DNA of 55,776 nucleotides from Hypanus sabinus (GCF_030144855.1 NC_082729.1:35286225-35342000); one strand, 5' to 3'; shown: positions 5,911-55,619, numbered from the stretch's first letter. The notes: generated from the sequence alone by a model not told the origin. Made by a program: numbers and translations.

Positions 5911-6239
5911 GTTGTAGTTTCTCAATGTTGCAAGTGTTTCAATCATTTTTTGTAAGTTAAACCAGAAATGCCCAGTAATCCTTCAAAATTCCATTTCATT
6001 TCTGTGCAGATCTAAGAAGGCCAGTATATGTTCCCCATCGCTAATTGTCCTTCAAAAAAGATCGGGGTCATGCCACACCCTTTAATCGACAGTCTGATGA
6101 AACGGGCTGCAGGGTTCAGAGCCAGTGACGGTGAGCGATGTGATTTAGCTGGGCCGTGATCAACTGGCAGAGCAGACTCGATGGGCCGAATGACCTGATT
6201 CTCCTGTGCTTTACAGGCTTATAGATTTGGGAGAGCAGG

Positions 6240-6660
6240 AGAGGCACCAGGGTTAGGAGGAGATGTAGTCGAAGTTGCCCGGGCGAGGAAACGATGTGAA
6301 CTCTGCAGACACACGCTATCCGCCAGTGGTGAAGAGAGATGTCTGGGGGCACGGATGGGATGCCAAACGAGGACTGGATGGTGTTGGCCTTCTGTACAGT
6401 TGTCGGACCTTGGCAGGTGGGGATTGTCCTGTCACACTCCTGAGCTGTAGATCACGGAGAAGGGAATGTAGTGATGTGGAATGCAGAGTCTAACTCCAGC
6501 CAGGGAAGTTAACATCACACTCCTGACCGGTGGGAAGGCCCGGGAGGTGAGTCACCCACATCAGGACTCCACCCCCTCCACAACCATCCTGCTTCTGCGC
6601 TGGCAAGGAGCTTCCAGTCAGCTTCCAGCACACGGCGTGAGCGGCGTGGGGTGGGGGCAC
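6240..6660 (-). mobile_element. L2-like LINE fragment
   Basis: Degenerate LINE ORF2-like peptide pieces (HIVSSPGQLRLHLLLTLV); assignment by resemblance only. Confidence 0.4.
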
Positions 6661-16240: not shown

Positions 16241-16260
16241 TTTTCTCTCCACTGTGGCAG

Positions 16261-16535
16261 AACGTTCCATCAACATAACCCCAACACACCTGAACGTGGG
16301 AGTAAAGCCCTTAGTCCTGATGTACAGAGTGGGTGGATTTTACCCAAAAGAACGCCAACACGACGTGGCTGCCGAATGGCAAAGCCATCAAGCAGGAGGT
16401 GTTCAGGAGCAGCATTTTGCCAAATTAAGACATTCCAACTCGGACTTTATGTCAGTATTGACCCCAGCAGAGGGGATACCTGCAGTTCTCAGTTGGAGCA
16501 GAGGAATGTCGTGGAGAGACTGAGCGCAGTTTGGG
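16261..16535 (+). pseudogene. Pseudogenised MHC Ig-C1 exon, paralogue of 31631-31912
   Basis: AG at 16259-60 and G|GTAAGG donor at 16536. Across three frames it reads ERSINITP..KPLVLMYRVGGFYPKE / ANTTWLPNGKAIKQEVFRSSILPN* / FQLGLYVSIDPSRGDTCSSQLEQRNVVERLSAVWG. It has two frameshifts, TAA at 16426-28, and both Ig Cys lost (TAC 16323, TCT 16487). Confidence 0.9.
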
Positions 16536-17257
16536 GTAAGGTCCAGAGTCTGCACTCGTGGAACTACAAGTGATTGGCATCCTGCACTTCAAACTCTTTT
16601 CAACACTGTGGCGATGATCTTCAGACACGGGACGGTTGGGAAATGCACTTGTGATTATCTGCATTGTCAGGTGTCAGGTCTCAGGCAGAAAACAGTGGAC
16701 AAACCAAAGCCCTAACGGATCCATGTCACGTGCTTTCCGTGGTGCCTCGATAAAAATTGGTGAGGGTACAATGGGAGCAGACAAATTTCTTTAGTCTCCT
16801 AAAAATTATAAGCTCTCGAACCCACCACCATTGCTGGTAAATAGGAGTGCTTGCACCGCCACCTCCCAGAAGTCTAGGGCCAGCTCTTTCATTCTGCCGA
16901 CAGTCCGGGAGAGTTTGTTAGCGCGACTCCATGCCACTGGCTCTCTCTCTCTTTCCTCTACTTCCTCCCCTTGGTAACTGAGATCCAGCTCGTCTCAGTG
17001 GTCTCATCTGCAGACTTGTAGGTGGGGTTCAAGCAGAATCCGGCCAGGAGGTAGTGAGTGCACAGGGAGCGGGGGTGGGGGGGCTGACAATGCGCCTTGT
17101 GGAATTCCAGTGAAGCCACCTACCTCATCTCTGGTCTCTTGCACCACCTATTGTTCATTGGCAGCACCTCTTAAAATTATTACCCATATTATCCGTGTCC
17201 CTCTATAGCCCTTTATGATGCTAGGTACCTTATTGTTCACTTCTTTCTTTTTAAATC

Positions 17258-27039: not shown

Positions 27040-27590
27040 CCAACCTCACACCTTCCCCCTCATCTGGCATACCCCCATGACTACCAACCACCTCACCTGC
27101 TATCCCCTCTTACCTGGTAGCCCCCTCCACCCACCCCCACACACACACAAACACCGTCCCTCTCACCTGGTATCCTTCCTGCCCCTACCACCCACCTTAT
27201 TGCTCACCTGGTATCCCATATGCACTCACCTTCTCCTTCACCTGCTTTCCCCCATTCCACCTCCCCCTCACCTGGTACTACACCCTTACCTGGTACTACA
27301 CCCTCCCCAGCTCCCTTCTCACCTGGTATCCCACCCACACAGCTACCTCCCCCTCACCTGGAGTCCCACCTCCCCTCACCTGGCACCTCACACACCCACC
27401 TCCCCTCACCTGGCACCTCACACACCCACCTCCCCTCACCTGGCACCTCTCACACCCACCTCCCCTCACCTGGCACCTCACACACCCACCTCCCCTCACC
27501 TGGTATCCCACCCACCCACTTCCCCCTCACCTGTTATTACCCGCCCCCCATCCATGCTCCTCTCACCTGGTATCCCAGTCACCTCTCATC
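27040..27590. repeat. C-rich minisatellite; core is four ~perfect 30-bp units (tcccctcacctggcacctcacacacccacc) at 27371-27490
   Basis: Periodicity is visible directly; the ORF track shows the matching 10-aa repeat HTPTSPHLAP; degenerate ctcacctgg units flank the core. Confidence 0.95.
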
Positions 27591-27599
27591 TATAGTTGT

Positions 27600-27960
27600 T
27601 GAGTCTTGTTCAGAATAAAGTGCCAGAAGCGAATAGAAGGCGTTCCCCCGCCCCGCCTCGCCAGTGGCAGCGGCCGCCCACACAGCGAGGGAAACTTCTC
27701 CAGCGATCGCCTCCGCTACGGGACCTGCCGGCTGGCGACCAGTTACGCGCGGAGAGGCTGTGTGACGGGCTGTTCCTCGGTCCTCGGCGGAAGGGATGGG
27801 AGCAATGATGCCGTCTCCGCGAACCGTGAGCCAGCTGCTCCTCCCGCTGGCCCAGGAACCGCCAGCCGGTGCGAGGCGACGCCGCTCTCCCTGTTTGCTC
27901 GCCGCCTTCCTCCTCCTGCTCCTCAACGGCTCCACTGCCCTGGGTGAGGAGCGCGGCGCA
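27600..27960 (+). promoter_or_regulatory. TATA-less CpG-island promoter/first exon of the MHC-family gene
   Basis: CpG-rich; Sp1-type ccccgccccgcc near 27646; lies directly upstream of and across the leader exon. Confidence 0.75.
27796..27943 (+). CDS. MHC-family gene (probable W-category beta chain) exon 1: signal peptide
   Basis: gggATGG Kozak context; MGAMMPSP...ARRRRSPCLLAAFLLLLLNGSTAL (basic n-region, hydrophobic core); phase-1 donor G|GTGAGG at 27944. Confidence 0.85.
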
Positions 27961-28810
27961 AGGGGAGGCGCCGGGGAGGGGGCACTAGGGAGGTAGAAGA
28001 TGGGTGGAAACTGAGGAAGGGTGGGCAAGAGAGGGAAGGGGGCAACTAGGGAGGGGAGGGGAAGGGCACCAAGGGAGTGTAGGGAGAGGAACTGAGGGCG
28101 GGTTAAGAGGGGAGGAGAATGGGCACCAATGGAGGGTGGGAAGTGGGCATCGAGAAAGGTTGGGGAGGAGAGGGAAGTGACATTGAGGCAGGGTGGGGAG
28201 TGAATACTAAAGGAGGGTGGAGAGCTGAGGGGAAGGTACCAATGGAAGGTGGAGAGGAGGGGGTGGCAATGGAGGGTAGTGGAGAGGGCACCAGGGGAGG
28301 GGAGGGGGTTCCAAAGGAACGTGGGGAGTGGAGAAGGCACCAAATGGGCATGGGAAGGGAAGGACACACTCAGGCAGAGAGCAGGTAGGGAGGGAGTGGA
28401 GGTGGATTGAGTATCATTGAGGGGGTGGTGGAAGGGGAGGGGGCATTGGGGATGAGTGTGTGGGGGAGGAAATTGGGTGCCAAAGGTGTGTAAGGAGGGA
28501 GAGGGGTGCTATGGGTGGGACAGAAGGCTGAGGAGTGGAGATGTGTGGATGCAGCGAGTGGGTAGGAGAGAGGACACTGAGATTGGGAGGGGAGGGGCCA
28601 CCAAGGATGTTTGGGGAGGGAAGGAAGAGGTCACTGAGAGCGGGTAGGGAGAGAGGCTGGTGTGGACAGTGAGGAGAGATGTCTGTGGAGAGGCATTTCA
28701 ATGGCGAGGAGGGGTTTGGGCGAAGAGGTGGGTGGGGATGTAGGCATCGAACTGAGGAAGAGGTGGGTGCAGAGAGTGAGGTTGTTGAGTTTTACAGTGG
28801 GAGGGATAGG
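27960..28810 (+). repeat. G/purine-rich low-complexity tract in intron 1
   Basis: Dense GGG/GGGG runs (ggagggga, ggggagg) over ~850 bp; G-quadruplex-prone by composition. Confidence 0.85.
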
Positions 28811-28969
28811 TGGCTCTGGAGGAATGGCACCGTTTTGCCAACAGAATGGCGTGTATCCACAGAAGGGACAGACAGATCTGTTGTTTCAGTTCGATTAATC
28901 TTAAAGTTTTAAAATGAGCCATTTCACTCTCACAAATCGCTAATGGACCGATTATTATTTGCTTGCCAG

Positions 28970-29227
28970 GAATGCGCATCATTCAAGTGACTTTCTCTGG
29001 TAAAGGTCCGGAGTTCTCAATGCCTGCCCTGAAGTTTGCTTACAACGGCAAAGACACTGTTCACTTTAATTATACCACAGAAAAGTTTGTGGCCATCGAT
29101 CCACTTGTAAAGTCTTACGTGAAAGAGCTGAACTCCGATGCAAAGCTTATCAAAAACGTTAACAACTTTGTTAATGACATGCCTTTTGCCATGGAGATAA
29201 TTCACCAGAATCTTCAAGCTCTGACTG
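28970..29227 (+). CDS. Exon 2: membrane-distal domain (beta1; class I alpha2-like), 86 codons
   Basis: tttgcttgccAG| ... G|GTAAGT, phase 1-1, 258 nt: GMRIIQVTFSGKGPEFSMPALKFAYNGKDTVHFNYTTEKFVAIDPLVKSYVKELNSDAKLIKNVNNFVNDMPFAMEIIHQNLQALT. AYNGKD corresponds to class I A117-Y-D-G120-K-D122; Q6 corresponds to Q96. Confidence 0.9.
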
Positions 29228-29254
29228 GTAAGTTTATTTTCACACCAAAAAAAA

Positions 29255-29720
29255 ACCTGCAGATGACGGAGATCCAGGCAACACACACAAAGTGCTGGAG
29301 TTGCTCAGCAGGCCGAGCAGCATCTATGGAAAAGAGTAGAGTCGACGTTTTGGGACTGGAGAAACAAAGATGAGGAGTCAGAGTTAGAAGGAGGAGAGGG
29401 GTGAAGTAAGGAGCCGGGAAGTTGATTGGGAAAAGGGGTACAGGGCTGGAGAAGGAAGAATCTGATGGGAGAGGACAGAAGGGCATGGAAGAAAGAAAGG
29501 GGTAAAGCACCAGTCAGAGGTGATGTGTAGGTAAGGTGAGAGAGGGAAAAGGGAATGGGGAATGATAAAGTGGGGGGGACATTACTGGAAATTCAAGATA
29601 TCGATGTTTTACCCGGGCGGAATATGTTATTCCTCCAATGTGAGTGCGGCCTCATCCTGACAGAAGAGGAGGCCATGGTATGGGAATGGGAAGTGGGATT
29701 AAAGTTTTGTTTTCAAAGCG
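29255..29720 (-). mobile_element. PLE terminal fragment in intron 2
   Basis: acacacaaagtgctggagttgctcagcaggccgagcagcatctatgg..gtcgacgttttggg and a GIY-YIG C-terminal remnant. Confidence 0.75.
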
Positions 29721-29971
29721 ATGTTCAAGCAGGCTGTGTGGCTTAGGCTGATAGAGAGGGCAAAACAAGGGAACACACACACCAGTCCTCAAAGAGGGAT
29801 CAGAAGTGGAGGGAGTGAGCAATTTCAACTGTTAGGCGTCAATATCTCTGAGGATCTATCCTGGGCCCTACATATCGAGGCAGTTACAAAAAAGGCACGA
29901 CAACGGCTTTATGTCATTAGGAGTTTGAGGAGATTTGGTGTGTCAAAGATGCATGCAAATTTCTACAGATA

Positions 29972-30415
29972 TAACCATACAACAATTATAGCACGGAAAC
30001 AGGCCATCTCGGCCCTTCTAGTCCGTGCCGAACGTTTACTCTTACCTAGTCCCACCGACCTGCACTCAGCCCATAACCCTCCATTCCTTTCCTGTCCATA
30101 TACCTATCCAATTTTTTTTTAAATGACAATATCAAACCTGCCTCTACCACTTCTACTGGAAACTCGTTCCATGTAGCTACCACTCTCTGAGTAAAGAAGT
30201 TCCCCCTTGTGTTACCCTTAAACTTTTGCTCAACTCTCAACTCATGTCTTCTTGTTTGAATCTCCCCTACTCTCAATGGAAAAAGGCTATCCACGTCAAC
30301 TCTATCTATCCCCCTCATAATTTTAAATACCTCTATCAAGTCCCCCCTCAACTTTCTACGCTCCATAGAATAAAGACCTAACTTGTTCAACCTTTCTCTG
30401 TAACTTAGGTGCTGA
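29972..30415 (-). mobile_element. CR1 3' fragment
   Basis: FQHLSYRERLNKLGLYSMERRKLRGDLIEVFKIMRG; (catataac) tail. Confidence 0.88.
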
Positions 30416-30711
30416 AATTGTGTAGGTATAACTGGCTGCACAGGGGGAGGGGTGTAGATACTTCAAAGGGTTGAAAGAAGCTGCAGAAGGTTCTGAACTC
30501 AGTCAGTTGCATCCTGGGCACTAGCCTCCTTAGCATTCAGGAATCTTCAGGGAGTGATGCCTCAAAAAGGCAGCGTCCATCATTAAGGACCCCCACCACT
30601 CAGGACATGCCCTCTTCTCATTGCTGCCATCAGGGAGGAGGTACAGGAGCCTGAAGGCACACACTCAATGATTCAAGAAAAGCCTCCCTGGGAATCACTG
30701 CTGTAGCCTCA

Positions 30712-31152
30712 TTCACTTTGACATGTTGTACGTTCAGAGATGTTCTTCTGCACGCCTCTGTTGTAACATGTGGTGATTTGAATTACTGTCCCCTTCCCGT
30801 CAGCTTGAACCAGTCTGGCCATCCTCCCCTGACTTCACTCATGAACGAGGCGTTTTTGCCCACAAAGCTGCCGCTCACTGGATGTCTTTTTCTCTGTGAA
30901 CTCGAGAGACTGTTGTGTTTGAAAGTCCCAAGAGATCAGCAGTTTCTGAGATACTCAAACCACCCCATCTGGTCCAAGGTCAAAGTCAATTAGATTGCAT
31001 TTCTTCCCCATTCTGATGTTTGGTCTGAACAACAACTGAACCTCTTGACAATGTCTGCATGCTTTTATGCATTGAGTTGCTGCCACATGATTGGCTGATT
31101 AGAGGTTTATACTAACGAGCAGGTGTACCTAATAAAGTGGACACTGAGTGTA
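30712..31152 (-). mobile_element. Tc1-derived element
   Basis: Same family as 24215-24685; TIR cctaataaagtggacactgagtgta. Confidence 0.8.
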
Positions 31153-31630
31153 TGTCATTGATATTAAACCTGATTTGGATCTGCACTAACCTGTAGCTAA
31201 TTAACCTTACCATGCAAATTTTCATTTCTAAGTATTTCCACCTTATGGAAACCTTGGGTTACCAACAGTTCTTGAAACTTTCATGTGACCTGGGAGTAAC
31301 TGAAAGAACCATGCCCCTGGTCGGAGGCAGATGACCAGCGACCGTTTCTAAACACAAAAGATTCTGCAGATGGTGGCAATGCAAAGAAATGCACAGGCAC
31401 GCACATGCACACAAGAATTCAGCAGGCCAGGCAGCATCTAGGGAGGTGAATAAATATAGGAGCAGGATTAGGCCATTCGACCCATCGTGTCTGTTCCACA
31501 ATTCTGTCATGATGGAATCTCAATGTTGTAAAATGTATTCATGCTTTAATAATAAACATACTTTGAACTTTTAAATTCTATTGCTCTTTACTTTTTCTGA
31601 TCAGCTTCAATGTGTTTCTGTCCACTGCAG

Positions 31631-31912
31631 CGAAGCCGACTATCACAATAACCTCAAGACCCCTGAAGAACAGAAAGAATTCCTTGGTCCTGAGTTGCCA
31701 AGTGTGTGGATTTTATCCCAGGGATATCCACACAACATGGCTGCGAAATGGTATGGCGATCGACCAGGAAGTGCAAATGACAAAAATTTTACCCAACCAG
31801 GATGGGACGTTCCAAGTCCAGCTACAGGTCGAAATTGACCCTGGGAAGGGTGACACTTATACTTGTGAAATCAAGCATTTGAGCATCCCTGACAAGCTGC
31901 ATGTAGTTTGGG
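31631..31912 (+). CDS. Exon 3: Ig-C1 domain (beta2; class I alpha3-like), 94 codons
   Basis: tgtccactgcAG| ... G|GTAAGG, phase 1-1, 282 nt: AKPTITITSRPLKNRKNSLVLSCQVCGFYPRDIHTTWLRNGMAIDQEVQMTKILPNQDGTFQVQLQVEIDPGKGDTYTCEIKHLSIPDKLHVVW; canonical C..GFYP..W, LPN.DGTFQ, Y.C...H. Confidence 0.97.
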
Positions 31913-31990
31913 GTAAGGCTTAGAGTCTGAATAATTTGAGGTTCAGTGTACTGGTGACAATCTGGTTCACACTCTGTCCAACACCGTATT

Positions 31991-32365
31991 ATACACTCAG
32001 TGGCCACTTTATTAGACACCTCCTCTACATAATAAAGTGCCCACTGAGTCATGTTTATGGACTTTTTCTGCTTTAGCCCATCCACTTTGAGGTTCTAAAC
32101 ATTCAGTGATGCTCTTCTGCACACTACCATTGTAACAGCGGTTCTTTGAGTTACTATTGTGTTCCTGTTAGCTTGAACCAGTCTGGCCGTTCTCCTCTGA
32201 AATCTCACTAACAAGGCAGTTTTGCCCACATCTGCCACTCAGTAGATGATTTTTGTTTGTTTGTTTTTCACACTATTCACTTTAAACTCCAGAGACTTGT
32301 ACCTGAAAATCCCAGAGCTCAATAATTTCTGAGATACTCAAACCACCCCGTCAGGCATCAACAAT
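31991..32365 (-). mobile_element. Tc1-derived element
   Basis: TIR tacactcagtggccactttattag at 31991; same family body. Confidence 0.78.
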
Positions 32366-33276
32366 CGTTCAAAGGTTCATTTACTATCAAATTATGTATT
32401 CAGTGTACAACTCTGAGATTCATCTTCTCCAGATAGCCACGAGACAAAGAAAACCACGGAAGCCGTTCAAAGATAAACATCAAACCCCGCCCCCACTGCA
32501 CAAAGAAAATCAAAACTTAACAAGACCATCAACCCCCACCAAACCCCCGCTCCCTTACGTAAAAAAACTAACAAAAACCTCAAGCCCCAAACCCCCTCCC
32601 CTCGAGCAGAAAACTAATAAAACATGCCATGCAACAACAAGCGAAAGAACAGGCAAAAACACAGAATATAAAAAAACGTAAGACTGAAAAAATCCATAGT
32701 CCAACACACTGCATAGTCTACTCAAACACAGAGGCCTACCCTCCAACAACAGTAAGTGAAAGGCACCACACAGACTTCTCTGACAGCAGGGAAGTCTGTC
32801 CCTACAATCAAATGGCGAGTAGTCACCTCGGATTCAATCTTCCCTGACACTTTAATCTGCGAAATGGAGTCGATCATTGGCCCATGCCTCATCTTTAAGC
32901 TGCTTCTCCTTGAGGCTGTTTGATTTAGGGAACCCTCCACGAGTTCTCCCAAGTACTTTGCTTTTGTACTACCTTGTATGTATGGAATGATGGTTTGGAT
33001 ATCATGCTCACAAATACTTTTTACTCTACTTCAGTGTATCATAATAAGCCAATTAACACACTTCTGACCCCAGTGGATATGAGCCCAGCCTGTCTGACCC
33101 TTTGTCATAAGACAACTGGCACATTCCAGCAGTCTAACTGGCATGTAGCATAATACTTTAACTGCCAGTGACCTGGGTTCAAACCCAGCACATTCTTCTT
33201 CGAAAGGGGGCCATTCTCTGTTGTTGTACTGGACCAAGACCACAGAGGTCTAGTGAAGACAATAAAGTATGAACAA

Positions 33277-33484
33277 CTGTGGCCTGTCTGCTCACAGCTG
33301 TAATATCTTCTGGCCAACAGGTAGCCAAACTGCTCTCTGCTAAAATATCTTCTGACCAACTGTGGTCTATTTGCTCTCTGCTGTAATATCTTCAAACTAA
33401 TTATGGCCAAACTGCTCTCTGCTCTTGTATCTTCTGACCAACAACCATGGCCAAACTGCTCTCTGCTGTAATATGTTCTGACCC
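33277..33484. repeat. Degenerate ~41-bp minisatellite (about 5 units) just upstream of the TM exon
   Basis: Repeated ggccaaactgctctctgctgtaatatcttctgaccaac units. Confidence 0.85.
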
Positions 33485-33505
33485 CACTTTTACTGATTTT
33501 CCTAG

Positions 33506-33607
33506 ATCCCAGGAATACCTATCCAGTCTACGGATATGTAATTGGAATAATCGCTGGAATAATTGGCATTCTGATTGCAGTGGCTGGAGGAATAATCAGG
33601 TGGAAAG
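33506..33607 (+). CDS. Exon 4: connecting peptide / transmembrane / start of tail
   Basis: ctgattttcctAG| ... G|GTAGGA, phase 1-1, 102 nt: DPRNTYPVYGYVIGIIAGIIGILIAVAGGIIRWK; hydrophobic Gly-rich helix with RWK stop-transfer. Confidence 0.9.
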
Positions 33608-34494
33608 GTAGGAATATTTTTGTACGTACTCATCAGACTGGGGATCACTTTTTCTTCCAACCCTTCATTTAAAAAAAGCCACAGATACCCAGTTGGCCAA
33701 ATACCCAATCTGGTCATCTGAGACCCAGTGATTCAGCATGGGTTATCACACCAAAATCTACACCAAGTGTGGTAGAACATAAGGGCAGGCCAGAGAACAA
33801 GGAGTAATTCAAGACGGAAACAGACCCCTGGTTCACACTGACCATCAAATATCCATTTTTATTTATCCAACTTTGTTCTTCCAACATTCCCATTAGCTCC
33901 AATTAAACTCCCCCCCCCCCACAACACCTACACATGAGAGACATTCCCATCAGGAGAGTGGAACCTTGGGAGAAAGGGACACCATAGGGAGGCGCTGGGC
34001 AGTAAGGAGGTGAAGGGGTAATGGGTAGCCAGAATGGGGAATGGATAAAGATAGGATGGGAAGGGGAAAGGAATTACCAGAAATCAGAGAGATCGATGCA
34101 ACTCACTGTCATCTCCCAGCATGTATTCCTTTCCCTCCTCCTGCCTTATTCTTACTTCTGCCCCCTTCCACTCCAGTCCTGAGGAAGGTTCTTGACCTGA
34201 AGCTTTGACTGTTTATTCCCCTCCATCATTGCTGCCTCACCTGCTGAGCTCCTCCAGCATTCTGTGTGAGTGGCTCTGGATTTCCAGCATCTGCAGAACC
34301 CCTTGTGTTTATCAAATGTTCAATGATGCAGATTCATGGTGAGAGAGGAAAGGTTCATGGAGATTTGTGAGGAGAACTGTTCTGCACAGACAGCGGTCGG
34401 CACCTGGGGCACCAGGGGAGGTGCTGGAACCAGGTATGATAGCAATGTTTAAGACCATTTTGGCAGACAGGTGAACAGGCAAGAAGTGGAGCCT

Positions 34495-35032
34495 CAGTGA
34501 CCACTTTATTATGTTTCTCATACACCAGTAATAAAGTGGCCACTGTGTGTATGTTCATGGTCTTCTGCTGCAGCCCATCAATTTCAAAGTTCGACATGTT
34601 GTTTATTCAGATTTGCTCTTCTGAACACCACTGTTGTAACGAGTGGTTATTTGAGTTACTGTCACCTTCCTGTCAGCTTGAACCAGTCTGGCTGTTCTCC
34701 TCTCACCTCTCCCATTAACAAATTGTTTTCACCCTCAGAACTGCCACTCCACTTTTGTTCCTCTCACCATTCTCTATGAACTCTGGAGACTTGTATGTAA
34801 AAATCCCAGGAGATCAGCCCCAACTGAGATACTCAAACCACCCCATCTGGCACCAACAATCATTTCACAGTCAAAGCCATGTAGATCACATTTCTTCCCC
34901 TTTCTGATGCTCGGTCTAAACAACAAATGCACCTCTTGACTATGCCATGCATTGAGTTTCTGCCACATGATTGGCTGATTAGGTGTTTCTATTAATGAGG
35001 AGGTGTACCTAATCAAGTGGACATTGAGTGTA
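34495..35032 (-). mobile_element. Tc1-derived element
   Basis: KKCDLHGFDCEMIVGARWGGLSISVGADLLGF on minus; TIR-like taatcaagtggacattgagtgta. Confidence 0.82.
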
Positions 35033-35659
35033 GGTCAGTAATATTAAGCTTGCTTCTGATCTGCACTAACCTGTAGCTAATTAACCTCACAGTGTAACTT
35101 CTGATATTTCAGCCATCAGTCGGGTTACCAACTGTTCTTGGAACCCTCATGTGAATTGGGAGTGTCTGAAAGAACCGTTCCCCTGGTCAGTGGCCTCTCC
35201 TGAGCAGTGTAACCACCAAAGTCAGAGTAAATTTGTAATTTTTATTACAAGTTGTAAAATTAAAATCTGTTAAAGTTTAGTAAGGGCATCAAAGATCATG
35301 GGGAGAAGGCAGGAGAATGGGGTTGAGATTGACAATAAATCAGCTGCAATGGAATGGCCAGAGCAGACTCGATAGGCCAAATGGCCTAATTCTGCTTCCA
35401 TGCCTTGTGATTTAAATATATCATCAAAGTACATATATGCCACCAAATATCGCCTTGAGATTCATCTTCTTGCGGGTATTTACAGGAAAATAATTACAAT
35501 CAAATTTATGAAAACTACACATAAACATTGATCGACAACCAATGTGCAAAAGACAAATTGTGCAAATAAAAACATAAATAATACTGAGAATGAGCTGCAC
35601 AGTCCTTGAAGGTGAGTCTGTAGGTGTGAAATCAGTTCAATTACGTCCCTAAATAAAAC

Positions 35660-35925
35660 AATGGTGTGGACTGCTGCCCCACGCTCTACAGTAAAGACGA
35701 CCTGGGTTCAATTCCCATCATTGCCTGTAAGGAATTTGTACGTTCTCCTCATGAGTGTCTGGGTTTTGTCCGGGTGCTCTGGTTTCCTTCCACAGTCCAA
35801 AGGATGTACAGTTTGGAGGTTAATGGGTCATTGTTAATCCCATGATAAGGCTAGGATTAAATCGAAGGATTGCTGGGCAATGCGGCTCAAAGGGCCAGCA
35901 GGGCTTAGTCCATGCTGTATCTCAA
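35660..35925 (+). mobile_element. V-SINE/HE1-like SINE
   Basis: Box-B-like ctgggttcaattccc followed by the V-domain ctgtaaggaatttgtacgttctcc..gggtgctctggtttccttccaca; a second partial copy lies at 38330-38432. Confidence 0.75.
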
Positions 35926-36539
35926 AAAAAAATTTATCAACAATTGATTCAGCAGCCTGACGGTTGGGCGGTAATGACTGTTCCTGATGGTCATGTGGGC
36001 CTTGAGACTCCTGTACCTCCTGCCCAGTAGTAGTAATTAGAAGAGAGCATGGCCTGGATGGTTGAGGTCCATGATGATGGATGCTGCTTTCCTAGGTCTT
36101 CATCAACTGATCTAGGTTAGGAAACTCACTACACAACTCTTGATTAATCAAAGCTCGCACTTTATTGTCTCTGCACAAACTTAAAATATGAATTCTGTTG
36201 TTCCCTCTATACCAATACCCACTCAGACCACTTTTCCAATTTATAATACCTATATAGAGGATTTCCCATTGGCCTGACATCAGATCCTTTCCGCTCCCAG
36301 CCCCTGGAATGGTGATTCCTCATTGTGATGGTTAGTCTCCAGAGTTCTCACCATTTTGCATTTGAAGCTCTTAAGTCTTATAGTTTTCCTTGTCAGTTCA
36401 AATAATGCACTCCTGTCTTGGCTCGAGGTCTTCTGACTGGCCTATAACGGATGTAGTACAAGGGCTACACAACACCATGCCTTAGGCAACTTCATTTGTT
36501 TTCTTCAACTCTGGTTCAAACCAGTTCACCCAGAAACTG

Positions 36540-37020
36540 GGTAAAGATTAGAAACATAGAAAACCTACAACACAATACAGGCCCTTTGGCCTGCAAAGTT
36601 ATGCAAACATGTCCTTACCTTAGAAATGACCTAGGGTTACCCGTAGCCCTCTATTTTTCTGAGCTCCATATACCTGTCCAGGAGTCTCTTAAAAGACACT
36701 ATCGTATCTGCCTCCACCACCGTCACCGGCAGCCCATTCCACACAATCACCACTCGCTATGGAAAAAAAACTTACCCCTAACATCTCCTCCGTACCTATC
36801 TTCCAAGCAACTTAAAACTGTGCCCTCTCGTGCAAGCCACTCCAGACCTGGGAAAAAGCCTCTGACTATCCGCACAATCAATGCCTCTCATCATCTTCTA
36901 CACCTCTATCAGGCCACCTCTCATTCTCCGTCGCTCCTAGGAAAAAAGGCCGAATTCACTCAACCTATTCTCAAAAGGCATGCTCCCAATCCAGGCAACA
37001 TCCTTGTAAATCTCGTCTCA
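36540..37020 (-). mobile_element. CR1 3' fragment
   Basis: aacatagaaaacctacaacacaatacaggcccttt.. tail and the reverse-complemented RT C-terminus. Confidence 0.75.
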
Positions 37021-39959
37021 GATTACTTCTGCAAGAATGCCATCGTACACAATACATAATCTACCTATTATCTGAGTTCAATAGCGGAAACTCCTTGTGT
37101 CCGCATTCAATTGCTCTGATTAAGATATCCCACAGAAAGAATCAGTTCATCAAACTGTTCACAAAATGGAGGTTACAGAGGAGCTTCACAAAATAGCAAC
37201 CTCTATTCCTTCAAGCACATGGCAAGAACTTCCACTATCCTTGACGCATTCAAGTTCAATGTTTTATTCCATAATTTAATTCCTTCACGGCCAACAGCAG
37301 CACTCCTTATAAATGTTCTCAGTGGTGGGGAAGGCTTTACCTGTGATGGACTGAGCTGTGCCAACCACTTCCTGTGGACTTCTCCATTTTTATAGAGGAT
37401 TCTCAAAGTTTTTGATGACTTCTAAAACTTCTAAAACTTCTAAAAAATTAGAAATGCTGCAGTCCTTTCTTTTTGACAACACAATCTGCTGGTTCCAGCA
37501 CAGATTCTCTGATAAGGTAATGCCAAGGAATTGAGAAGTTACTGACCCTCTCCACCACTGATCCCCCAATGAGGACAGGCTCATGGACCTCTGATTTCCT
37601 CCTCCTGGATCAATAATCAGTTCTTTGATTTTGCTGAATTTGAATGAGAGGTTGCTGGTATAGCAGCATTCAACCAGATTTTTAATCTCGCTCCTATCTG
37701 CTGATTCATCAACGCCTTTGATTTAACCCCAAGTGTTGCATTTAATTCATTTCTTGAGAATCCGTGTGTCAATAGTAAGACCGACAGTTACCATTTATGA
37801 TGAACTTCCTTCTTTAACTATCTTGCTGGACCATGTCTCGGTGCTTTCAAAGTGTCCCATTCCAGCAGACTTTAGATTGCAGTCTTTCCCCATACTGCCT
37901 TTGCATGCCCCGAACTGCAGTGTGTCCCTCAACAGCATTCCCTTGCAGACACCTCAGTGACTTCACCATGCTTATCAGAGTTCAAAGTGAATTTATCATC
38001 AAAGTACATATATGTCGCCATAACCAACCCTGAGATTCAATTTTCTTCTCAATAAACCCATAATAGCATTGATTATTTCTCTCCAGCTCATCATGGCTCT
38101 CAATGTGGGATAAAGTGGATTCAAGACTTCATATTTTCAAATGCAAGAACCTCTGTTAAATGCCCAGGTAATACCTTCTTCAACTGAAGATGCATATTGC
38201 CATTAACTAGTGTGGAGTCTCCACAGGGCCTTCCTTGAAGAAAACACTTGCCCCTTTCATTTCAGTCACCTGCGGGCAGCACACTGTTGATCACATGTTA
38301 ATCACCCGAGCACACACAACCTTAAGAATGGGTAGCACGGTAGCATTACCAGCAACCTGGGTTCAATTCCCACTGCTGCCTGTAAGGAATTTTGTACAGT
38401 CTCCTCCTGACCGTATGGGTTTCCTCCCACATTCCAAATGCCATAAGACATTGGGGCAGAAAACAGCCCATCGAGTCTGCTCTGCCATTCCATCATGGCT
38501 GGTTTATTATCCCTCTCTCCATTCTCCTGCCTTCTCCCCAAAATATTTGAAGCCCTTGCTAATCAAGAACCTTTCAACCTCCACTTTAAATATGGCTTGT
38601 CCTCCACAGCTGTCTGTGGCAATGAATTACACAGATTCACCACCTTCTGGCTGAAGAAATTCCTAGAAGGTTAATTGCTGTTGTGGGTGTGATTGGTTGG
38701 CGTAGGCTCTTCAGACCTGAAGGGCTTCTTACTGTGCTGTTTCTCTAAACACAAATCAACAGTGATAGCTGTAGAGTGTGAGAGCATCACAGCACAGAAA
38801 CTGGCCCTTTGGCTCATCAATTTCATACCAAAAAGCATTTAAATTGCCTACTCCCATTGACCCTCAACCGGAACATAGCACTCCACACCAGCCCCATCAA
38901 AGTACTCACCCAAACTTCTCTTAAATGTTGAAATCAAACCTGCAATCACCACCTCCACTGGAAGCTTAATCCACACTTGTGCCATCCCGAGTGAAGATGT
39001 TGACTTGATACCTTACTGACCATCGGGGTATATCGCCCGTAAGTATACGAGATTCTGTAGATGCTGGAAATCTTGAGCCAAGTGCTGGAGGAACTGGGCA
39101 AGTCCCAGGGTGGGAATGGGGGCATAATTTTCAGGTGATTAAAAGTAAGTATAGTAGAGGGTATCAGAGGTTTGTGATTTTACACAGATGGTGATGGCTG
39201 CGTGGAATGTGCTGCCAGAACTGGTGGTAGAGGCAGATACATTAGGAGCATTTAAGAAACTCTTAGATTGGAACATGGGTGATATAAAATAGAGGTCTAT
39301 GTAAGAGACCTTTTATTGGTCTCTTTTATTAGACTGCTTTTTTACTACTATTTTTGCACTACTTCTTTAATAATCTAATATATATTATTACTGTAGTTCA
39401 TATTTTTTCTGTTATTATGTATCGCACTTTACTGTTGCAGCAAAGACAAATTTCACAAAATATGCCGATGATATTAAACCTAGGTCTGATTTTGGTAGAA
39501 ACAGGGTCTTTTGGCCCAACTCATCCAGGCCAACTAAATTTATCAGAATCAAGATTAATATCATCGGCATACGTTGTCAGATTTGTCTTTGCGGCAGCAG
39601 TACATTGCGGTACATAGTAATAAAAAACTGTAAATTATAGAAAGTAAGTAATTAAATTAAATAAGTGGTGTAAAAAGAGGGGAAAAAAAGTAGTGATGTA
39701 GTTTTTCAGGGTTCAATGTCCATTCAGAAATTGGATGGCAGAGGGGAAGAAGCTATTCCTGAATCATTGAGTGTGTGCTTCAGGCTCCTGTACCTCCTCC
39801 CTGATGATAGCAATGAGATGAGGGCATGTTCTGGGTGATGGGGGTCTTTAATGATGGTCGCTGGGGAGGCTAGTGCCCACGATAGATCTGACTGAGTTCA
39901 CAGCTTCCTGGAGCTTTTTCCAATCCTGTGCAGTAGCCCATACCAGACAATGATGTAGT

Positions 39960-40930
39960 TTGTTCTTATTACCTACTCTAAGATCGGTCTAACCCTTCCC
40001 TCCTGCACAGCCCTACATTTTCCTTTCATCTGTATGCCTCAGAGTCTTTTCAATATCCCTAATGGTTCTGCTTCTACCACCAAAACTGGCAGGGGATTCT
40101 TCACACTCACCATTTTCTGTGTTTTACAATGAAAACTTACACCTGAGATACCCCTTACACTTTCCTCCAAACACCTAAATTATGCCCCTTCAGATTAGTC
40201 ATTACTGCCCTGGGAAAAAGTCTCTGACTATCATTGCCTCTCATACACCTTTTTCAAATTGCCTCTCATCCTCCTTCACTCTGACACACTCAACCTATTC
40301 TCATAAGACACACTCCACAATCTCGGCAGCATCCTGGTAAATCTCCTCTGCACTCTCTCTGAAGCTTCCTTCCTATAGGAGGAGATCTGGACTGAACACA
40401 CTATCCATGGCCTCCTCTACTGTCAAGATGAAGCCGCACTCAGGTTGGAGGAACAACACCTTATATACTGGCTGGGTAGCCTGCAACCTGAAGGCATGAA
40501 CATTGTCTTCTCTAACTTCCATTAATGCCCCCCTCCCCTTCTTACCCCATCCAGGATATATTTAGTTTCCCCCCCCCCCACCTTCTTTCTCTCTCTCTCT
40601 CTCTGCCCATCAGTCTGCCTGTTCTCCATCTCCCTCTGGTGCTCCCCTCCCCCTTTCTTTCTCCCTAGGCCTCCTGTCCCATGATCCTTTCCCTTCTCCA
40701 GCTCTGTATCACTTCCGCCAATCACCTTTCCAGCTCTCAGCTTCACCCCACCCGCTCCGGTCTTCTCCTATCATTTCGCATTTCCCCCCTCCCCCCTCCT
40801 ACTTTCAAATCTCTTACTATCTTTCCTTTCAATTAGTCCTGACGAAGGGTCTTGGCCCAAAATGTTGGCTGTGCTTCTCCCTATAGATGCTGCCTGGCCT
40901 GCTGTGTTCCACCAGCATTTTGTGTGTGTT
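39960..40930. mobile_element. CR1 fragment (-) fused to a PLE end (+)
   Basis: CR1 reverse to ~40412, then tatccatggcctcctctactgtcaagatgaagccgcactcagg (GIY-YIG C-terminus) through the PLE terminus at ~40930. Confidence 0.75.
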
Positions 40931-41379
40931 ACACTATTCCAAATGTGGTTCAACCCGGGTTTTATAGAGCTGCAACAATACATATCAGCTCTTGAACTCA
41001 ATCCCTCGACTAATGAAAGCCAACATACCATATGCCTTCTTAACCACCATTTCAACTTGCATGGCAAATTGGAAGTTACCGGGGACATGGATCCAAAGGT
41101 CCCTCCGTCCTCCACAATACTAAGAATACTGCCATTAACCCTGTACTCTGCCTTCAAACTCAACCCTCCAATGTGAATCACTTCAGTTTCTGGGTCCAGC
41201 TCTGTATTCTACCAATGTCCTGTTGTAACTTACAACAACCTACTACACTGGGCACAACCATGTCATCGAGAGTAACAATTAATCCTGTTTGATATGGGGG
41301 AAAGTTACATTAAGTCAGCATATTGGAGTCAGTGCAAATTCTTTGCTGTGCAATCTCCTCAACAGTGTCAGTAATACCG

Positions 41380-41660
41380 TGTATCCGGACAGCACACACA
41401 AAATGCTGGAGGAATTCATCAGGACAGGCAGCATCTATGGAAAAGAGTCAACATTTTGGGCTGAAACCCTTCCACAGGACACCCCAGAACTCTGCTCCTC
41501 GTCTTTTCTTCTCCAGTCCTGCCGAAGGGTCTTGGCGCAAAACATCACCTGTTTACTCTTTTCCATAGACATGGCCTGGCCTGCTGAGTTCCTCCAGCAT
41601 TTTGTGTGTGTTGCTTTGGATTTCCAGCACCTGCAGATCTTCTCTTGTTTGCCTTGTGTC
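41380..41660. mobile_element. Two short PLE ends in inverted arrangement
   Basis: acacacaaaatgctggaggaattc.. (minus) and its reverse complement ..ctccagcattttgtgtgtgttgc (plus), separated by ~40 bp. Confidence 0.7.
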
Positions 41661-42209
41661 TGGATGATTGATTCGATATCTGCCATATATGACGATGAGT
41701 TGAAACCAGCGCAGGAGAGTTTTAAATTGGAAAACCGCTGCACTGGGGCAGATCCACTCTCTCAAACTTGAAAGTTCGGGACCAGTGGTATGAGTAGTTG
41801 TCATAATTGAGGTCTTCCTTCGTTACAGTAGACGACCATGCCCTTTCCTCTCCATGCAGTGTGGCCGTTGAATCTCACTGTTGACCTCATCCACTCATGG
41901 GCATTTTCCTGTCTCACTGTGGGATAAGGCCACCAGCTACCCTTACCTGGTTTAACCGGTCCATCGAAGCAATGTACTGGGGTGTGGCTGCTGTCACACC
42001 TATACAGCTTCTTGGAGCCACAGGTGAGAGCTGAGTTGTCAGTCGCGGACCAATGTGAGTGAGCTGCCCCAGAATGGACACGATAAGTTTCTTCACCAGC
42101 AGTGCTACCCCTTCCTGGACATCTCATACACCCCACTTTGTATCTGGTAAACATCAGAAAAGCTAACTAAGGCACACTATGCACACATGAACCTGGGTCA
42201 GGAGGACAT

Positions 42210-42780
42210 AACCATTAGACATTGGAGCAGAATTAGGCCATTCAGCCCATCATATCTACTTTGCCATTCCAGCATGGCAGATTTATCATCCCTTTCAACT
42301 CCATTCTCCTGCCTTCTCCCCATAATCTTTGACACCCTTACTAATCAAGAACTTATCAAGCTCAACTTCAAATATACCCTATAACTTCTCCTCCACAGCT
42401 ACCTGTAGCAATGAATTCCGCAGATTCACAACCCCCTGGCTAAAGAAATTCCTCCTCATCTCTGTTCTAAAAGGACATCTTTCTAATCTGAGTCTGAGCC
42501 CTCTGGTCCTAGACTCCCCACTATAGGAAACATCTTCTCCACATCCACTCTACCCAGGCCTTTCAATATTTAGTAGGTTTTGATGACATTTCCTCGCCCT
42601 TGTTCTGAACTGTAGTGAGTATAGACCCAGAGCATTCAAATGCTCGTCATACATTAACCCTTTCATTTCTGGGATCATTCTCGTGAACCTCCTTTGGAAC
42701 CTCTCCACTGTCAGTACATCCATTCTTAGCTTAGGTCCAAAACTGCTCACGATGCTCCAAGTGCGGACTGCCTAATCCCT
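42210..42780 (-). mobile_element. CR1 3' fragment
   Basis: VERFQRRFTRMIPEMKGLMYDEHLNALGLYSL. Confidence 0.8.
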
Positions 42781-42891
42781 TGTAAAGCAGTAGCATTAAA
42801 TCCTGAAATGTTACATACTGTTGTTGACTGGTGCTGCCTTAATTATTACACGGTCCATATCTTCATCATCCCTCTTCTCTTTTTTTCTCAG

Positions 42892-42968
42892 ACATCTGCT
42901 TACACTGTGAAGATCGCCTTCTGCATGTTGAACTTGACCAGTTGCCGAAGTCTGCCTCTGAAGCTTGA
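42892..42968 (+). CDS. Probable terminal cytoplasmic exon of the MHC-family gene
   Basis: Very strong polypyrimidine acceptor (tcttcatcatccctcttctctttttttctcAG) in non-repeat sequence; phase-1 frame DICLHCEDRLLHVELDQLPKSASEA* gives a 288-aa product; candidate AATAAA at 44084-44089. Confidence 0.55.
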
Positions 42969-44784: not shown

Positions 44785-47700
44785 AACCATAGAACACTAC
44801 AGCGCGGTACAGGCCCTTCAGCCCTCCATGTTGTGCTGACTCATATAATCCTTTAAAAAGAAGTACTAAACCCACACTACCCCATAACCATTTTTCTTTC
44901 ATCCATGTGCCTGTCCAACAGGTTCTTAAATACCCCTAATGTTTTAGCCTCCACCACCATCACTGGCAAGTCATTCCAGGCACTCACAACCCTCTGTGTA
45001 AAAATCTTACCCCTGATGTCTCCCCTAAACTTCCCTCCCTTAATTTTGTACATATGCCCTCTGGTGTTTGCTATTGGTGCCCTGGGAAACAGGTACTGAC
45101 TATCCACCCTATCTATACCTCTCATGATCTTGTAGACCTCTATCAAGTCCCCTCTCATTCTTCTACGCTCCGAAGAGAAAAGTCCTAGCTCTGCTAACCT
45201 TGCTTCATATGACTTGTTCTCCAAACCAGGCAACGAACTGGTAAATCTCCTCTGCACCCTCTCCATAGCTTCCACATCCTTCCTATAATGAGGTGACCAG
45301 AACTGAACACAATACTCTAAGTGCGGTCTCACCGGAGATTTGTAGAGTTGCAACATGACCTCTCTACTCTTGAACTCAGTCCCCCTGTTAATGAAGCCTA
45401 GCATCCCATAGGCCTGCTTAACCACCCTATGAACCTGTGCAGCGATCTTGAGGGATGTATGGATTTGAGCCCCAAGGTCTCTTTGTTCATCCACACTTTT
45501 AAGTAACTGTCCATTAATCCTGTACTCAGTTTTCTGGTTTGTCCTTCCAAAATGCATCACCTCACACTTCACCAGATTGAACTCCACCTGTCATTTTTCT
45601 GCCCAACTCTGCAGCCTGTCTATATCCTCTTGTAACCTTCAACAACCTACAGCTCCATCCACAACTCCTCTAATCTTCATGTCATCCGCAACCTTACTCA
45701 CCCATCCTTCCGCCTCTATATCCAGGTCATTTATAAAAATCACAACTAGCAGGGGTCCCAGGACAGATCCCTGTGGCACTCCACTAGTCACCGACCTCCA
45801 GGCAGAATACTTTCCTTCCACAACTACCCTCTGCTTTCTTCCTTTAAGCCAATTTTTTATCCAAACAGGCAAGTTTCCACATCCCATGCCTCATGACTTT
45901 CTGGATGAGTCTCTCTTGAGGGACCTTGTCAAATGCTTTGCTAAAGTCCATGTAGACCTCATCCACTGCCCTACCCTCATCAATTTCATTTGTTACCTCT
46001 TCAAAAAACTCAATCAGGCTCGTGAGGCACGATCTTCCCTTCACAAAGCCATGTTGACTATCCATGAGTAGACTGCACTTCTCCAAATGCTCGTAGATCC
46101 TATCCTTTAGAATCCTTTCCAGTAGTTTGCAGACCACCGACGTAAGACTCACCGGTCTATAGTTCCCAGGTTTCTCCCTATTACCTTTTTTAAACAAGGG
46201 AACTACATTTGCCATTCTCCAGTCCTCCAGCACTTCCCCTGCAGCTAAAGAGGATTCAAAGATCATGGTTAATGCTCCTGCCATCTCTTCTCTCAATTCC
46301 CACAACAACGTGGGGTATATCATATCCAGTCCTGGGGATTTGTCAATCTTAATGTTTTTAAGAAGATCCAGCACTTCTTCCCTAATCTCCACATTATCCA
46401 GCACACAGGCCTGCTCTACTCCGACCTCATCTTGATCAAGATCCTTTTCACTTGTGAATACCGAAGCAAAGTATTCATTTAGGAGCTTCCCAACCTCCTC
46501 CGCCTCCAGGCACATGTTGCCCTCTTTATCCTTTAGCGGTCCCACCTTCGTTCTCGTCATCCTCCTATTCTTCACATACACATAGAACGCCTTGGGGTTC
46601 TCCTTAATCCTACACGCCAAGGCCTTCTCATGCCCCCTTTAAGCTCTCCTAAGTCCTTTCTTTAGCTCCTTCCTGGCTACCCTATATTTCTCATAAATCC
46701 CTCCTACTTCCTACTTCTTATATCTAACATATGCTTCCTTTTTCCTCTTGACGAGTTGACTCATGTGTTTCATCAGCCACAGTTCCCTTTTCCTACCATT
46801 TTTTCCTTGCCTCAGTGGGACAAACCTATCCTGAACCCAGCTCAAGTGGTCCCTAAACTTCTCCCACATTACTTCTGTGCTTTCCCCTTTGAACATCTGT
46901 TTTCAATTTACTCTCACTAGTTCCTGCCTCATCCCTTCAAAGTTAGTCCTTCCCCAGTTAAGCCCTTTACCATTTCATCTGATTTTATCCCTTTCCATAG
47001 CTATGCTGAAGCTAAGGGAGTTGTGGTCACTCTCACCAAAATGCTCCCCCACCAAGAGGTCTGTCACCTGACCAGGCTCATTACCCAGAACTAAATCCAG
47101 TATAGCCTCTCCTCTCATTGGCTGGTCCACATACTGTGTCAGGAATCCTTCTTGAACACACCTGACAAATTCAACCCCATCTATCCCCCTTGCACTCAGG
47201 AGGTGCCAGTCATAGGAACATAGAAAATAGGTGCAGGAGTAGGCTATTCGGCCCTTCAAGCCTGCACCGCTATTCAGTATGATCATGGCTGATCATCCAA
47301 CTCAGAACCCTGTACCTGCTTTCTCTCTATACCCCCGATCCCCTTAGCCACAAGGGCCATATCTAACTTCCTCTTAAATATAGCCAATGAACCAGCCTCA
47401 ACTGTTTCCTGTGGCAGAAAATTCCACAGATTCACCACTCTCTGTATGAAGAAGTTTCTCCTCATCTCAGTCCTAAAAGGCTTCCCCTTTATCCTTAAAC
47501 TGTGACCCCTCGTTCTGGACTTCCCCAACATCGGAAACAATCTTCCTGCATCTAGCCTGTCCAATCCCTTTAGAATTTTATACGTTTCAATAAGATCCCC
47601 CCTCAATCTTCTAAATTCCGGTGAGTATAAGCCTAGTCGATCCAGTCTTTCTTCATATGAAAGTCCTGCCATCCCAGGAATCAATCTGGTGAACCTTCTT

Positions 47701-54389: not shown

Positions 54390-55619
54390 TGTGACAGGAT
54401 TGGCTCATTGGATATTTGTATGAACGAGCAGGGGTACCTTATAAAGTGGCCACTGACTGTGTATGGAGTGTGAGAGGTTGCAGCCCCTGTTTGAGTGCTT
54501 GAACGAGCTGCTCCTCAAGTTCTGACTGCACATCAATCCCATGCTCATCAACCACAGTAACACAGCATGGGAGGGTGTCACTCAGGGATCTCTTGGTAGG
54601 CTCGTTCTTGGGCCTTGTCAAGATGGCCACGCACAGACCCAGGCAGCAGGCAGTCAAGGTCTCTGCTTGAGCCAACTGTCTGCCCTCTTCCAGTATTACA
54701 TTCGAGCTGGAGCATCCATGGAAAGGTAATATGCATGCAATCTCTATGGCACAACGAGGGATTTCTATGAACGGTGCACCACCACCTTCCCAACACCACC
54801 ACCAGCCCCCCACCAAGGGAATTGTGTGATTTGCAGACGACAGTAATCATATTTCATTTTGAAGTTGTTTAGACACTGTTGTAAATCCCTGACCATTGTG
54901 TGCCTTTTGTACGTTCTAAAAAAACACAGCATATACATTTGGCAAGAGTCAAGCGCTGAGACCTGAGAAGGAGTCACATCTGGCTGAAGCCCAAGGGAAA
55001 GTGTAATTTAACTCATCTTAAAGCTCTGAGGAAAGGGGGAACTATTACTTGCTGCCCTGAGAACAGAAAATGGTGTTTTACAGAGAGGCATGAGCTGCAA
55101 AAGAGAGGGCCAGCAGATTTTGTGAAAATCTTTTATTCTCCACAAACAATGCAGATTTATTTTTAGATTTACAGCGAATCCACTGAGATAATGATTAAGT
55201 TTAAGTTACAACAACAGTAATGGTCATACGTAAAGAAATACACCACATTTACTTTACAAAGAGAAGTGAAAATAGAGAAACCGGTGGTAAGGAAGTGGTT
55301 TACGGTGGCTTTGCGGCACAGCAGAGCAGAAGGGCTAAAATAGAGAGTGTGGAAGAAAATTATAAATAAAGTGTTAAAATATCTGAGTTGTTAACATCCT
55401 GCACCTTCATTTAATTAGCAATATCGCTAGTGCTGGCCTTAGTGCATAACACAGCTGTGTAAAGAAGACAGTGAAGGTCATAAATTGCAGGGAGGACCCT
55501 TGCAATCTCTCAGGCTAAGAAGTGTCCTGTTTATTCCCTCACAAACATAAAAATCAAATTATATCTTTCTACTTTAACAACTTACTGGATCTTAGGATTT
55601 AGTTAACCATCTATAGATC

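Follow-up and report, generated by a model that had tools for sequence, protein, structure and literature searches.

The stretch analyzed here, 55,776 nucleotides from the Atlantic stingray Hypanus sabinus (GCF_030144855.1, NC_082729.1:35286225-35342000; hereafter the window, with positions counted from its first nucleotide), contains on its plus strand an intact gene which very probably encodes a beta chain of the W category of the major histocompatibility complex (MHC), belonging to the WB_DS1-like lineage. W-category molecules have been proposed as an intermediate linking MHC class II with class I. The category, its WB_DS1 subgroup and its presence in batoids were published in 2021, when the batoid WB genes were known as fragments only, namely a partial beta1 and a beta2 exon of the little skate (Okamura et al., 2021, PMC8713811). 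No paper on stingray W genes was found in the literature searched.

Structure of the Gene and Its Product

The spliced open reading frame is composed of five constitutive coding exons and one alternative exon, and the product comprises 288 amino acids. The parts of the gene are as follows:

27796..27943, plus strand: coding part of exon 1, with the ATG at 27796, a 49-residue leader with a hydrophobic core at its end, and the donor GT at 27944; phase 1
27944..28969, plus strand: intron 1, purine/G-rich and devoid of coding exons
28970..29227, plus strand: exon 2, the membrane-distal beta1 domain of 86 amino acids with Q6 and A-Y-N-G-K-D, one N-glycosylation sequon (NYT) and no cysteine
31631..31912, plus strand: exon 3, the beta2 domain of the immunoglobulin (Ig) C1-set, with L-P-N-Q-D-G-T-F-Q (P57, and G61 where class II beta has W)
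33506..33607, plus strand: exon 4, the connecting peptide and transmembrane helix, with the G-x3-G-x2-G-x6-GG pattern found in houndshark WB_DS1
38087..38167, plus strand: alternative cytoplasmic cassette exon of 81 nt, phase 1, encoding 27 amino acids (AHHGSQCG...), included in RefSeq isoform X1 and skipped in X2
42892..42968, plus strand: fifth and last coding exon, a 25-residue cytoplasmic tail with the TGA stop at 42966-42968

Exons 1–4 are bounded by AG acceptors and GT donors with every junction in phase 1, and the four phase-1 GT-AG exons which an initial annotation of the window had joined into one open reading frame all lie at the junctions claimed. Four is not the full count, since the fifth tail exon and the alternative exon exist in addition; the end coordinate given at the time, 42968, is explained by the fifth exon with its stop codon. 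Intron 4, which separates exon 4 from the tail exon, measures 9.3 kb and houses the 81-nt cassette.

The 288-residue product is identical at 288/288 positions to the Hypanus sabinus RefSeq protein XP_059805592.1, while isoform X1 (XP_059805591.1, 315 amino acids) differs solely by the 27 residues encoded by the cassette. The gene is thus already annotated in RefSeq, under the automatic name “class II ... B-L beta chain-like”, and is not a new kind of gene. As predicted from its sequence, the encoded protein is a type I membrane glycoprotein consisting of a leader, one beta1 half-groove, one Ig-C1 beta2 domain, a connecting peptide, a glycine-zipper transmembrane segment and a short tail with the optional 27-residue cassette. 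The leader, the single membrane-distal domain, the single Ig-C1 domain and the connecting peptide, transmembrane and cytoplasmic parts are each encoded on their own exon or exons, which is the layout of class II beta genes. A comparable optional segment is observed after the R-W-K/R-G motif in shark and skate relatives.

Expression and the Interval Between Leader and Exon 2

Expression was assessed from the share of sampled 31-mers present in RNA data (four RNA runs, one sample). This share amounts to 0.64 in the stretch 28900-29300, of which exon 2 makes up 64%, and to only 0.09-0.16 in the stretch 27700-28969, which covers the 5′ flank, exon 1 and intron 1. The gene is expressed, its exon sequences being present in the RNA runs at shares equal to their exon fractions.

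The same shares bear on the question of whether the locus could be a class I-type heavy chain gene with an overlooked alpha1 exon, a reading to which exon 3 lends something, as its best unfused chains among solved structures are class I alpha3 domains, and exon 2 as well, since it aligns to class I alpha2 including the AYDGKD-type motifs. An extra exon of 260 nt would be expected to roughly double the RNA share of 27700-28969; the observed 0.09-0.16 corresponds to exon 1 and the 5′ untranslated region alone and therefore leaves no room for an additional exon of ∼260 nt in intron 1. Similarly, no alpha1-type exon was detected in the window by tblastn with class I alpha1-alpha2-alpha3 and class II alpha protein queries, which matched only exon 3, weakly exon 2 (on class I alpha2) and a decayed Ig exon at ∼16.3 kb. 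The combination of alpha1 and alpha2 on one chain, as in class I heavy chains, is consequently seen neither as an exon nor as a match, and the leader-beta1-beta2 layout is shared by both RefSeq isoforms and by the listed gene models from nine other elasmobranch species. The initial annotation had described introns 1 and 2 as lacking an alpha1-type exon and had named transcripts with such an exon between leader and exon 2 as an observation that would speak against it; the searches, the RNA shares and the RefSeq isoforms agree with its description, and the probability of a hidden alpha1 exon is practically negligible.

Domain Features and Interface Residues

At the level of profiles, exon 2 matches Pfam MHC_II_beta above the curated cut-off (1.3e-5) and, less strongly, the alpha2 portion of MHC_I (0.013), while exon 3 matches C1-set (1.3e-17). 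Among solved structures, the chains retrieved with exon 2 alone are exclusively chicken class II beta (E about 1e-3). The combined beta1-beta2 stretch gives similar scores with chicken class II beta (77 bits) and with unfused class I or MR1 chains (71-73 bits). An AlphaFold2 model based on 13 members of the family predicts the topology of an MHC beta chain, with four strands and a long broken helix, a seven-strand Ig domain and a transmembrane helix. In a Foldseek search of the PDB, the top 50 matches of this model belong without exception to class II beta chains (E about 1e-14).

Class I-type interface residues are present in both extracellular domains. The beta1 domain contains G-M-R-I-I-Q (Q6) and A-Y-N-G-K-D (A32, G35, D37), the latter falling on class I A-Y-D/E-G-x-D, and the L-P-N-Q-D-G-T-F-Q of beta2 falls on class I (I/R)-P-x-G-D-G-T-F/Y-Q. 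In HMMER alignments, these motifs are placed on ‘yaydgqd’ and ‘ilpsgdgtyq’ of MR1 and on ‘fayegrd’ and ‘rpagdgtfq’ of H-2Db, whereas chicken class II beta has I-Y-N-R-Q-Q at the A-x-x-G-x-D site. Beta2 retains P57 and carries G in place of the class II W61, in a column occupied by W in teleost class II beta and by G in class I. The motifs recorded in the initial annotation are accordingly all present, and its portrayal of the gene as class II in architecture with interdomain motifs of class I type is accurate with regard to both the exon layout and the residues. Across the family, Q55, A73, G76, P190 and D193 are invariant in 13/13 members, G194 is nearly so, and D or E predominates at position 78; conservation does not extend to the groove residues.

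As exon 2 contains no cysteine, the beta1 domain lacks a disulfide, and the beta1 W61 of class II, which contacts the peptide backbone, aligns to L in the stingray chain. Since the domain has neither the disulfide nor this peptide contact, the molecule is probably nonclassical, as far as can be judged from its sequence; W subgroups without full sets of peptide-binding residues have been described (Okamura et al., 2021, PMC8713811). The transmembrane segment, YGYVIGIIAGIIGILIAVAGGIIRWK, displays the same G-x3-G-x2-G-x6-GG spacing as the houndshark WB_DS1 row, HGYVAGIVIGVAGIIIALAGGIGRRR, in the portion of the published dataset available. It thus contains the transmembrane glycines of beta-chain type, namely a single GxxxG and a C-terminal glycine, a motif of beta chains that has been described previously (PMC13399432).

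Much of this would also fit a divergent nonclassical class II beta chain, either DM/DO-like or of a ray-specific lineage, which pairs with a conventional class II alpha chain and has acquired its class I-like residues by convergence. The RefSeq name, the Pfam match above the cut-off, the Foldseek matches and the protein-atlas neighbors, which are class II beta and DM beta clusters, all point in this direction. Resemblances of this kind are expected of a WB chain too, because W chains have class II architecture. The glycine at the otherwise invariant beta2 W61 and the A-x-x-G-x-D motif opposite the chicken I-Y-N-R-Q-Q argue for the W category instead, as do the nearest relatives, which are the published WB_DS1-like sequences themselves, and the alpha-type genes adjoining related loci, which are of WA type (alpha2 W61, L37) and not class II alpha (both described below). 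A class II beta chain of this kind is therefore considered improbable.

Affiliation With WB_DS1-Like Chains

The distal domain (85 amino acids) was compared exhaustively by phmmer with 1.84 billion cluster representatives (E <= 0.001), yielding four matches: a Mobula protein (71% identical), two shark WB_DS1-like proteins (39-40%) and one bacterial repeat protein (P0004), which was discarded as spurious. One of the two shark proteins (P0002) holds the exact strings given for “great white shark WB DS1L” in the available parts of Datasets S1 and S3, i.e., GAHMLQAQFSIEKSHHAAVSLRFAYDGTEVIQFNYTTN for beta1 and APKMKSWPTYGYVTGIVFMIFGI-IALAGGISRWRGLHACGS for the connecting peptide and transmembrane segment (Okamura et al., 2021, PMC8713811). 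Likewise, the N-terminal 44 residues of the “little skate WB DS1 like 01” beta2 row, as far as this row is available, are identical to two Amblyraja radiata proteins (P0016 and P0018) of the same family as the stingray protein.

Relatives retrieved through a word index are 87% (Hemitrygon), 71-77% (Mobula; full-length type-1 products, several paralogues), 54% (Pristis), about 50% (skates) and 37-48% (sharks) identical to the stingray protein, and all of them have been automatically named class II beta-like. Outside the family, the word-index searches yielded only a small number of class I and class II alpha proteins and a single teleost class II beta fragment. In BLAST comparisons, beta1, beta2 and the connecting peptide, transmembrane and cytoplasmic part each rank batoid and then shark WB_DS1-like sequences first, followed for beta2 by basking shark WB_DS3L (43%), class II beta (34%) and class I (33%). 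The full-length maximum likelihood tree of the family mirrors the species tree, separating sharks, skates, sawfish and myliobatiforms with a shark/batoid split supported at 99/97, and places the stingray protein as sister to Hemitrygon type 1 (100/100). It also reveals a duplication within myliobatiforms which gave rise to type 1 and type 2 WB_DS1-like genes. On one chromosome of Mobula hypostoma, at least five WB_DS1-like gene products are encoded (type 1a-c, a short form and type 2), some of them in opposite orientation (L003 27525-27599, minus strand), and the beta1 domain of type 2 is shortened by deletions of 6 and 3 amino acids.

The connecting peptide and transmembrane segment of the stingray chain differ from the WB_DS3, WB_Nds5L, class II beta and DM beta rows in the available part of Dataset S3, the comparison with WB_Nds5L having been made by eye only, against partial printed rows. 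Taken together, the identical strings, the BLAST ranks, the transmembrane spacing and the family tree indicate a WB_DS1-like gene and not an uncharacterized subgroup. The identity as a batoid W-category beta chain, proposed in the initial annotation, is hence supported by a chain of homology to published W sequences, in addition to the diagnostic residues and transmembrane glycines. The further suggestion of a possibly uncharacterized subgroup is not supported, as all three protein parts rank WB_DS1-like sequences first and the family tree follows the species.

Several observations weigh against this assignment. The Ig-domain maximum likelihood trees (30 and 19 rows; outgroups class I, class II alpha, one teleost class II beta fragment and the basking shark WB_DS3L and WA_DS10L exons) do not contain a WB_DS1-like clade, which occurs in 1-4% of bootstraps; long class I, class II and WB_DS3 branches join at varying points inside the short-branched WB_DS1-like set. 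Keeping the WB_DS1-like clade together costs 0.44 log-likelihood units (approximately unbiased test, p = 0.46), so that the clade is neither rejected nor shown. The exon 3 phylogeny suggested in the initial annotation as a check could thus be run, with few outgroups, and resolved no grouping with any lineage; the Ig domains in the founding study likewise grouped without resolution (Okamura et al., 2021, PMC8713811), and the trees are treated as uninformative on this clade. In addition, the comparison set comprised one class II beta (a teleost beta2), one WB_DS3L beta2 and no WB_Nds5L sequence, and the overall confidence of the AlphaFold2 model is low, with a mean predicted local distance difference test score of 57 (66-85 in the domains). 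Searches with pieces of skate WA_DS10L and WA_DS5L, with basking shark WA_DS10L and by tblastx detected no WA exon in the 55.8-kb window, i.e., in 27.8 kb upstream and 12.8 kb downstream of the gene. Finally, a WA/WB heterodimer that reaches the cell surface has been demonstrated for tiger salamander chains only (Okamura et al., 2021, PMC8713811).

Comparison With Related MHC Chains

WB_DS1 and WB_DS1-like chains of banded houndshark, great white shark and little skate (PMC8713811) share with the stingray chain the exon and domain layout, Q6, A32, G35, an acidic residue 37, the FNY[TS] sequon, the absence of a beta1 disulfide, beta2 P57 and G61, and the transmembrane glycine pattern followed by I-x-R-W-K/R. 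Compared with the shark WB_DS1-like sequences, the beta2 domain shows 42-64% identity and the beta1 domain at most about 42%, the value for the full-length Heptranchias beta1 being 39%. The stingray chain differs in its long leader, its optional cytoplasmic cassette exon and residue 37, which is D as in class I where shark WB_DS1 has E. At the genomic level, the lineage has been duplicated in myliobatiform rays into type 1 and type 2, and the neighboring WA gene in collinear ray loci lies tail-to-tail and not head-to-head.

Conventional class II beta chains such as chicken BLB2 and HLA-DRB1 have in common with the stingray gene the order of leader, beta1, beta2 and transmembrane segment, the phase-1 exons and, according to the model, the predicted fold. 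The stingray chain lacks the Cys15-Cys79-type beta1 disulfide and the beta2 W61, has A/G/D where class II has I/R/Q, and shows a different transmembrane glycine pattern from the class II beta rows in the available part of Dataset S3. The alpha2-alpha3 part of class I (HLA-A2, H-2Db and MR1) shares Q-...-A-Y-D/N-G-K/Q-D and P-x-x-D-G-T-F/Y-Q, which are beta2-microglobulin contacts in class I. In contrast to class I, the stingray chain has no alpha1 domain or exon and no alpha2 disulfide, its transmembrane segment is of class II beta/W type, and overall identity is about 25%. WB_DS3-like and WB_Nds5L chains belong to the same category and have the same architecture, yet their connecting peptide/transmembrane strings and beta1 rows are clearly different in the available portions of Datasets S1 and S3: WB_DS3 has a Cys-containing insertion in beta1, and WB_Nds5L has FFPRDI and another transmembrane segment. 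Moreover, position 61 is K in WB_DS3L, whereas it is G in the stingray.

Genomic Neighborhood and a Likely WA Partner

Published W-category pairs are arranged as head-to-head WA/WB genes, a layout reported for sharks, teleosts and the coelacanth, and the great white shark WB_DS1L is paired with WA_DS10L (Okamura et al., 2021, PMC8713811). As the window contains no WA gene, pairing in the stingray is deduced from collinear loci of other rays. The features relevant to this comparison, given in the coordinates of the respective locus, are the following:

Window, 16257..16567, plus strand: decayed WB-type Ig exon 11 kb upstream of the gene, interrupted by frameshifts and an in-frame stop, its first Ig cysteine replaced (…VLMYRV.GFYP…)
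Mobula hypostoma locus (L002), 30066-33850, minus strand: WA_DS10-like gene, tail-to-tail with WB
Hemitrygon akajei locus (L004), 29886-31826, minus strand: WA_DS10-like gene, tail-to-tail with WB
Basking shark locus (L001), minus strand: WA_DS10L exons alpha1 (about 6219-6326), alpha2 (about 3860-4142; G-E-D-W-R-F-Q and I-T-L-Q-K-N-G) and transmembrane (209-331)

In the basking shark, WA_DS10L lies directly upstream of WB_DS1L in head-to-head orientation, the called genes being 276 bp apart, and WB_DS3L follows downstream of WB_DS1L, tail-to-tail. The Mobula and Hemitrygon loci, which carry type-2 paralogues, are collinear with the window over about 13.5-55.67 kb at about 70-85% nucleotide identity, the collinear stretch including the decayed Ig exon. 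Their WA_DS10-like genes, with G-K-D-W-R-F-Q and V-T-L-Q-K-N in alpha2, lie 1.2-1.4 kb past the last aligned block (window 54.4-55.67 kb), and the stingray window stops about 1.1 kb short of the corresponding position. In basking shark, Mobula and Hemitrygon alike, a WA_DS10-like gene with alpha2 W61 and L37 hence adjoins a WB gene that is an orthologue or paralogue of the stingray gene, and comparison of these loci makes a nearby WA partner of the stingray WB gene likely.

From the same comparison, the orientation of the pair appears to differ between rays, where it is tail-to-tail, and sharks, where it is head-to-head. The decayed Ig exon is also found upstream of the type-2 WB genes, at L002 5973-6347 in Mobula and at about L004 5846-6418 in Hemitrygon, and is therefore older than the segmental duplication that separated type 1 from type 2; it did not arise as a recent pseudogene in the stingray. 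One tentative scenario, which is possible but rather doubtful, is that the myliobatiform WB_DS1-like/WA_DS10-like pair was rearranged from head-to-head to tail-to-tail before the whole unit of decayed Ig exon, WB and WA was segmentally duplicated into types 1 and 2. If so, the two chains would no longer be co-regulated through a bidirectional promoter, and WA partners may be shared or exchanged among several WB chains.

This setting also invites the view that the gene is an intact-looking but functionless remnant, for instance a WB gene lacking a partner within a degenerating cluster full of transposons, given the decayed WB Ig exon upstream, the LINE fragments in the flanks, the lack of a WA gene in the window and the absence of conservation in the groove residues. 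Such decay is at odds with the fully intact open reading frame, the canonical splice sites throughout, the presence of the exon sequences in the RNA runs, the 87% identity of the Hemitrygon orthologue, the invariance of structural residues across the family and the intact WA_DS10-like genes adjoining the collinear loci of other rays. A functionless remnant is thus quite unlikely, marginally more so than a divergent class II beta chain, and an intact WB_DS1-like gene remains the favored interpretation.

Proposed Assembly and Implications

By analogy with the published W molecules, the stingray WB chain would pair with a W-category alpha chain, most likely a WA_DS10-like one, into a class II-shaped heterodimer held together by the transmembrane glycine motifs and class I-like interdomain contacts (inferred from Okamura et al., 2021, PMC8713811). 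In such an assembly, W61 of WA alpha2 would pack under the platform against Q6, A32, G35 and D37 of beta1, P57 of beta2 would bond with Y8 of WA alpha2, and G61 would stand where class II has W, at the interface of beta1 and beta2.

The general picture of W-category molecules is unchanged by the stingray gene. What it adds is a complete and expressed stingray WB_DS1-like gene model with two isoforms, in which the class I-type interface residues are those kept across the batoid and shark members compared, and, taken with the loci of related rays, a hint that rays and sharks differ in how the WA/WB pair is organized. The apparent tail-to-tail arrangement and the type-1/type-2 duplication of rays would be modest additions. 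Furthermore, public annotation files WB genes as “class II beta chain-like”, which matters for class II gene counts in elasmobranch genomes.

Flanking Sequences and Repeats

No other host gene was detected in the window. Fragments of long interspersed nuclear elements (LINEs) with RVT_1 and endonuclease-reverse transcriptase domains fill the flanks and introns (8117-9431, 44880-49011 and 52044-54408), and a 41-bp tandem repeat in 5 copies (33270-33483) lies directly upstream of the exon 4 acceptor. In the promoter region (27600-27795), no S-X-Y or interferon-stimulated response element (ISRE)-type module was seen by eye, but only GC boxes and partial GAAA motifs. Just upstream of it, the following repeat is located:

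27365..27533, plus strand: C-rich 30-bp minisatellite, CCCACCTCCCCTCACCTGGCACCTCACACA, 5.6 copies

This minisatellite is partly complementary to the G-rich sequence of intron 1 at 27944-28700, with arms of 18-30 nt that are 77-89% complementary, and exon 1 is therefore bracketed by imperfect inverted low-complexity arrays.

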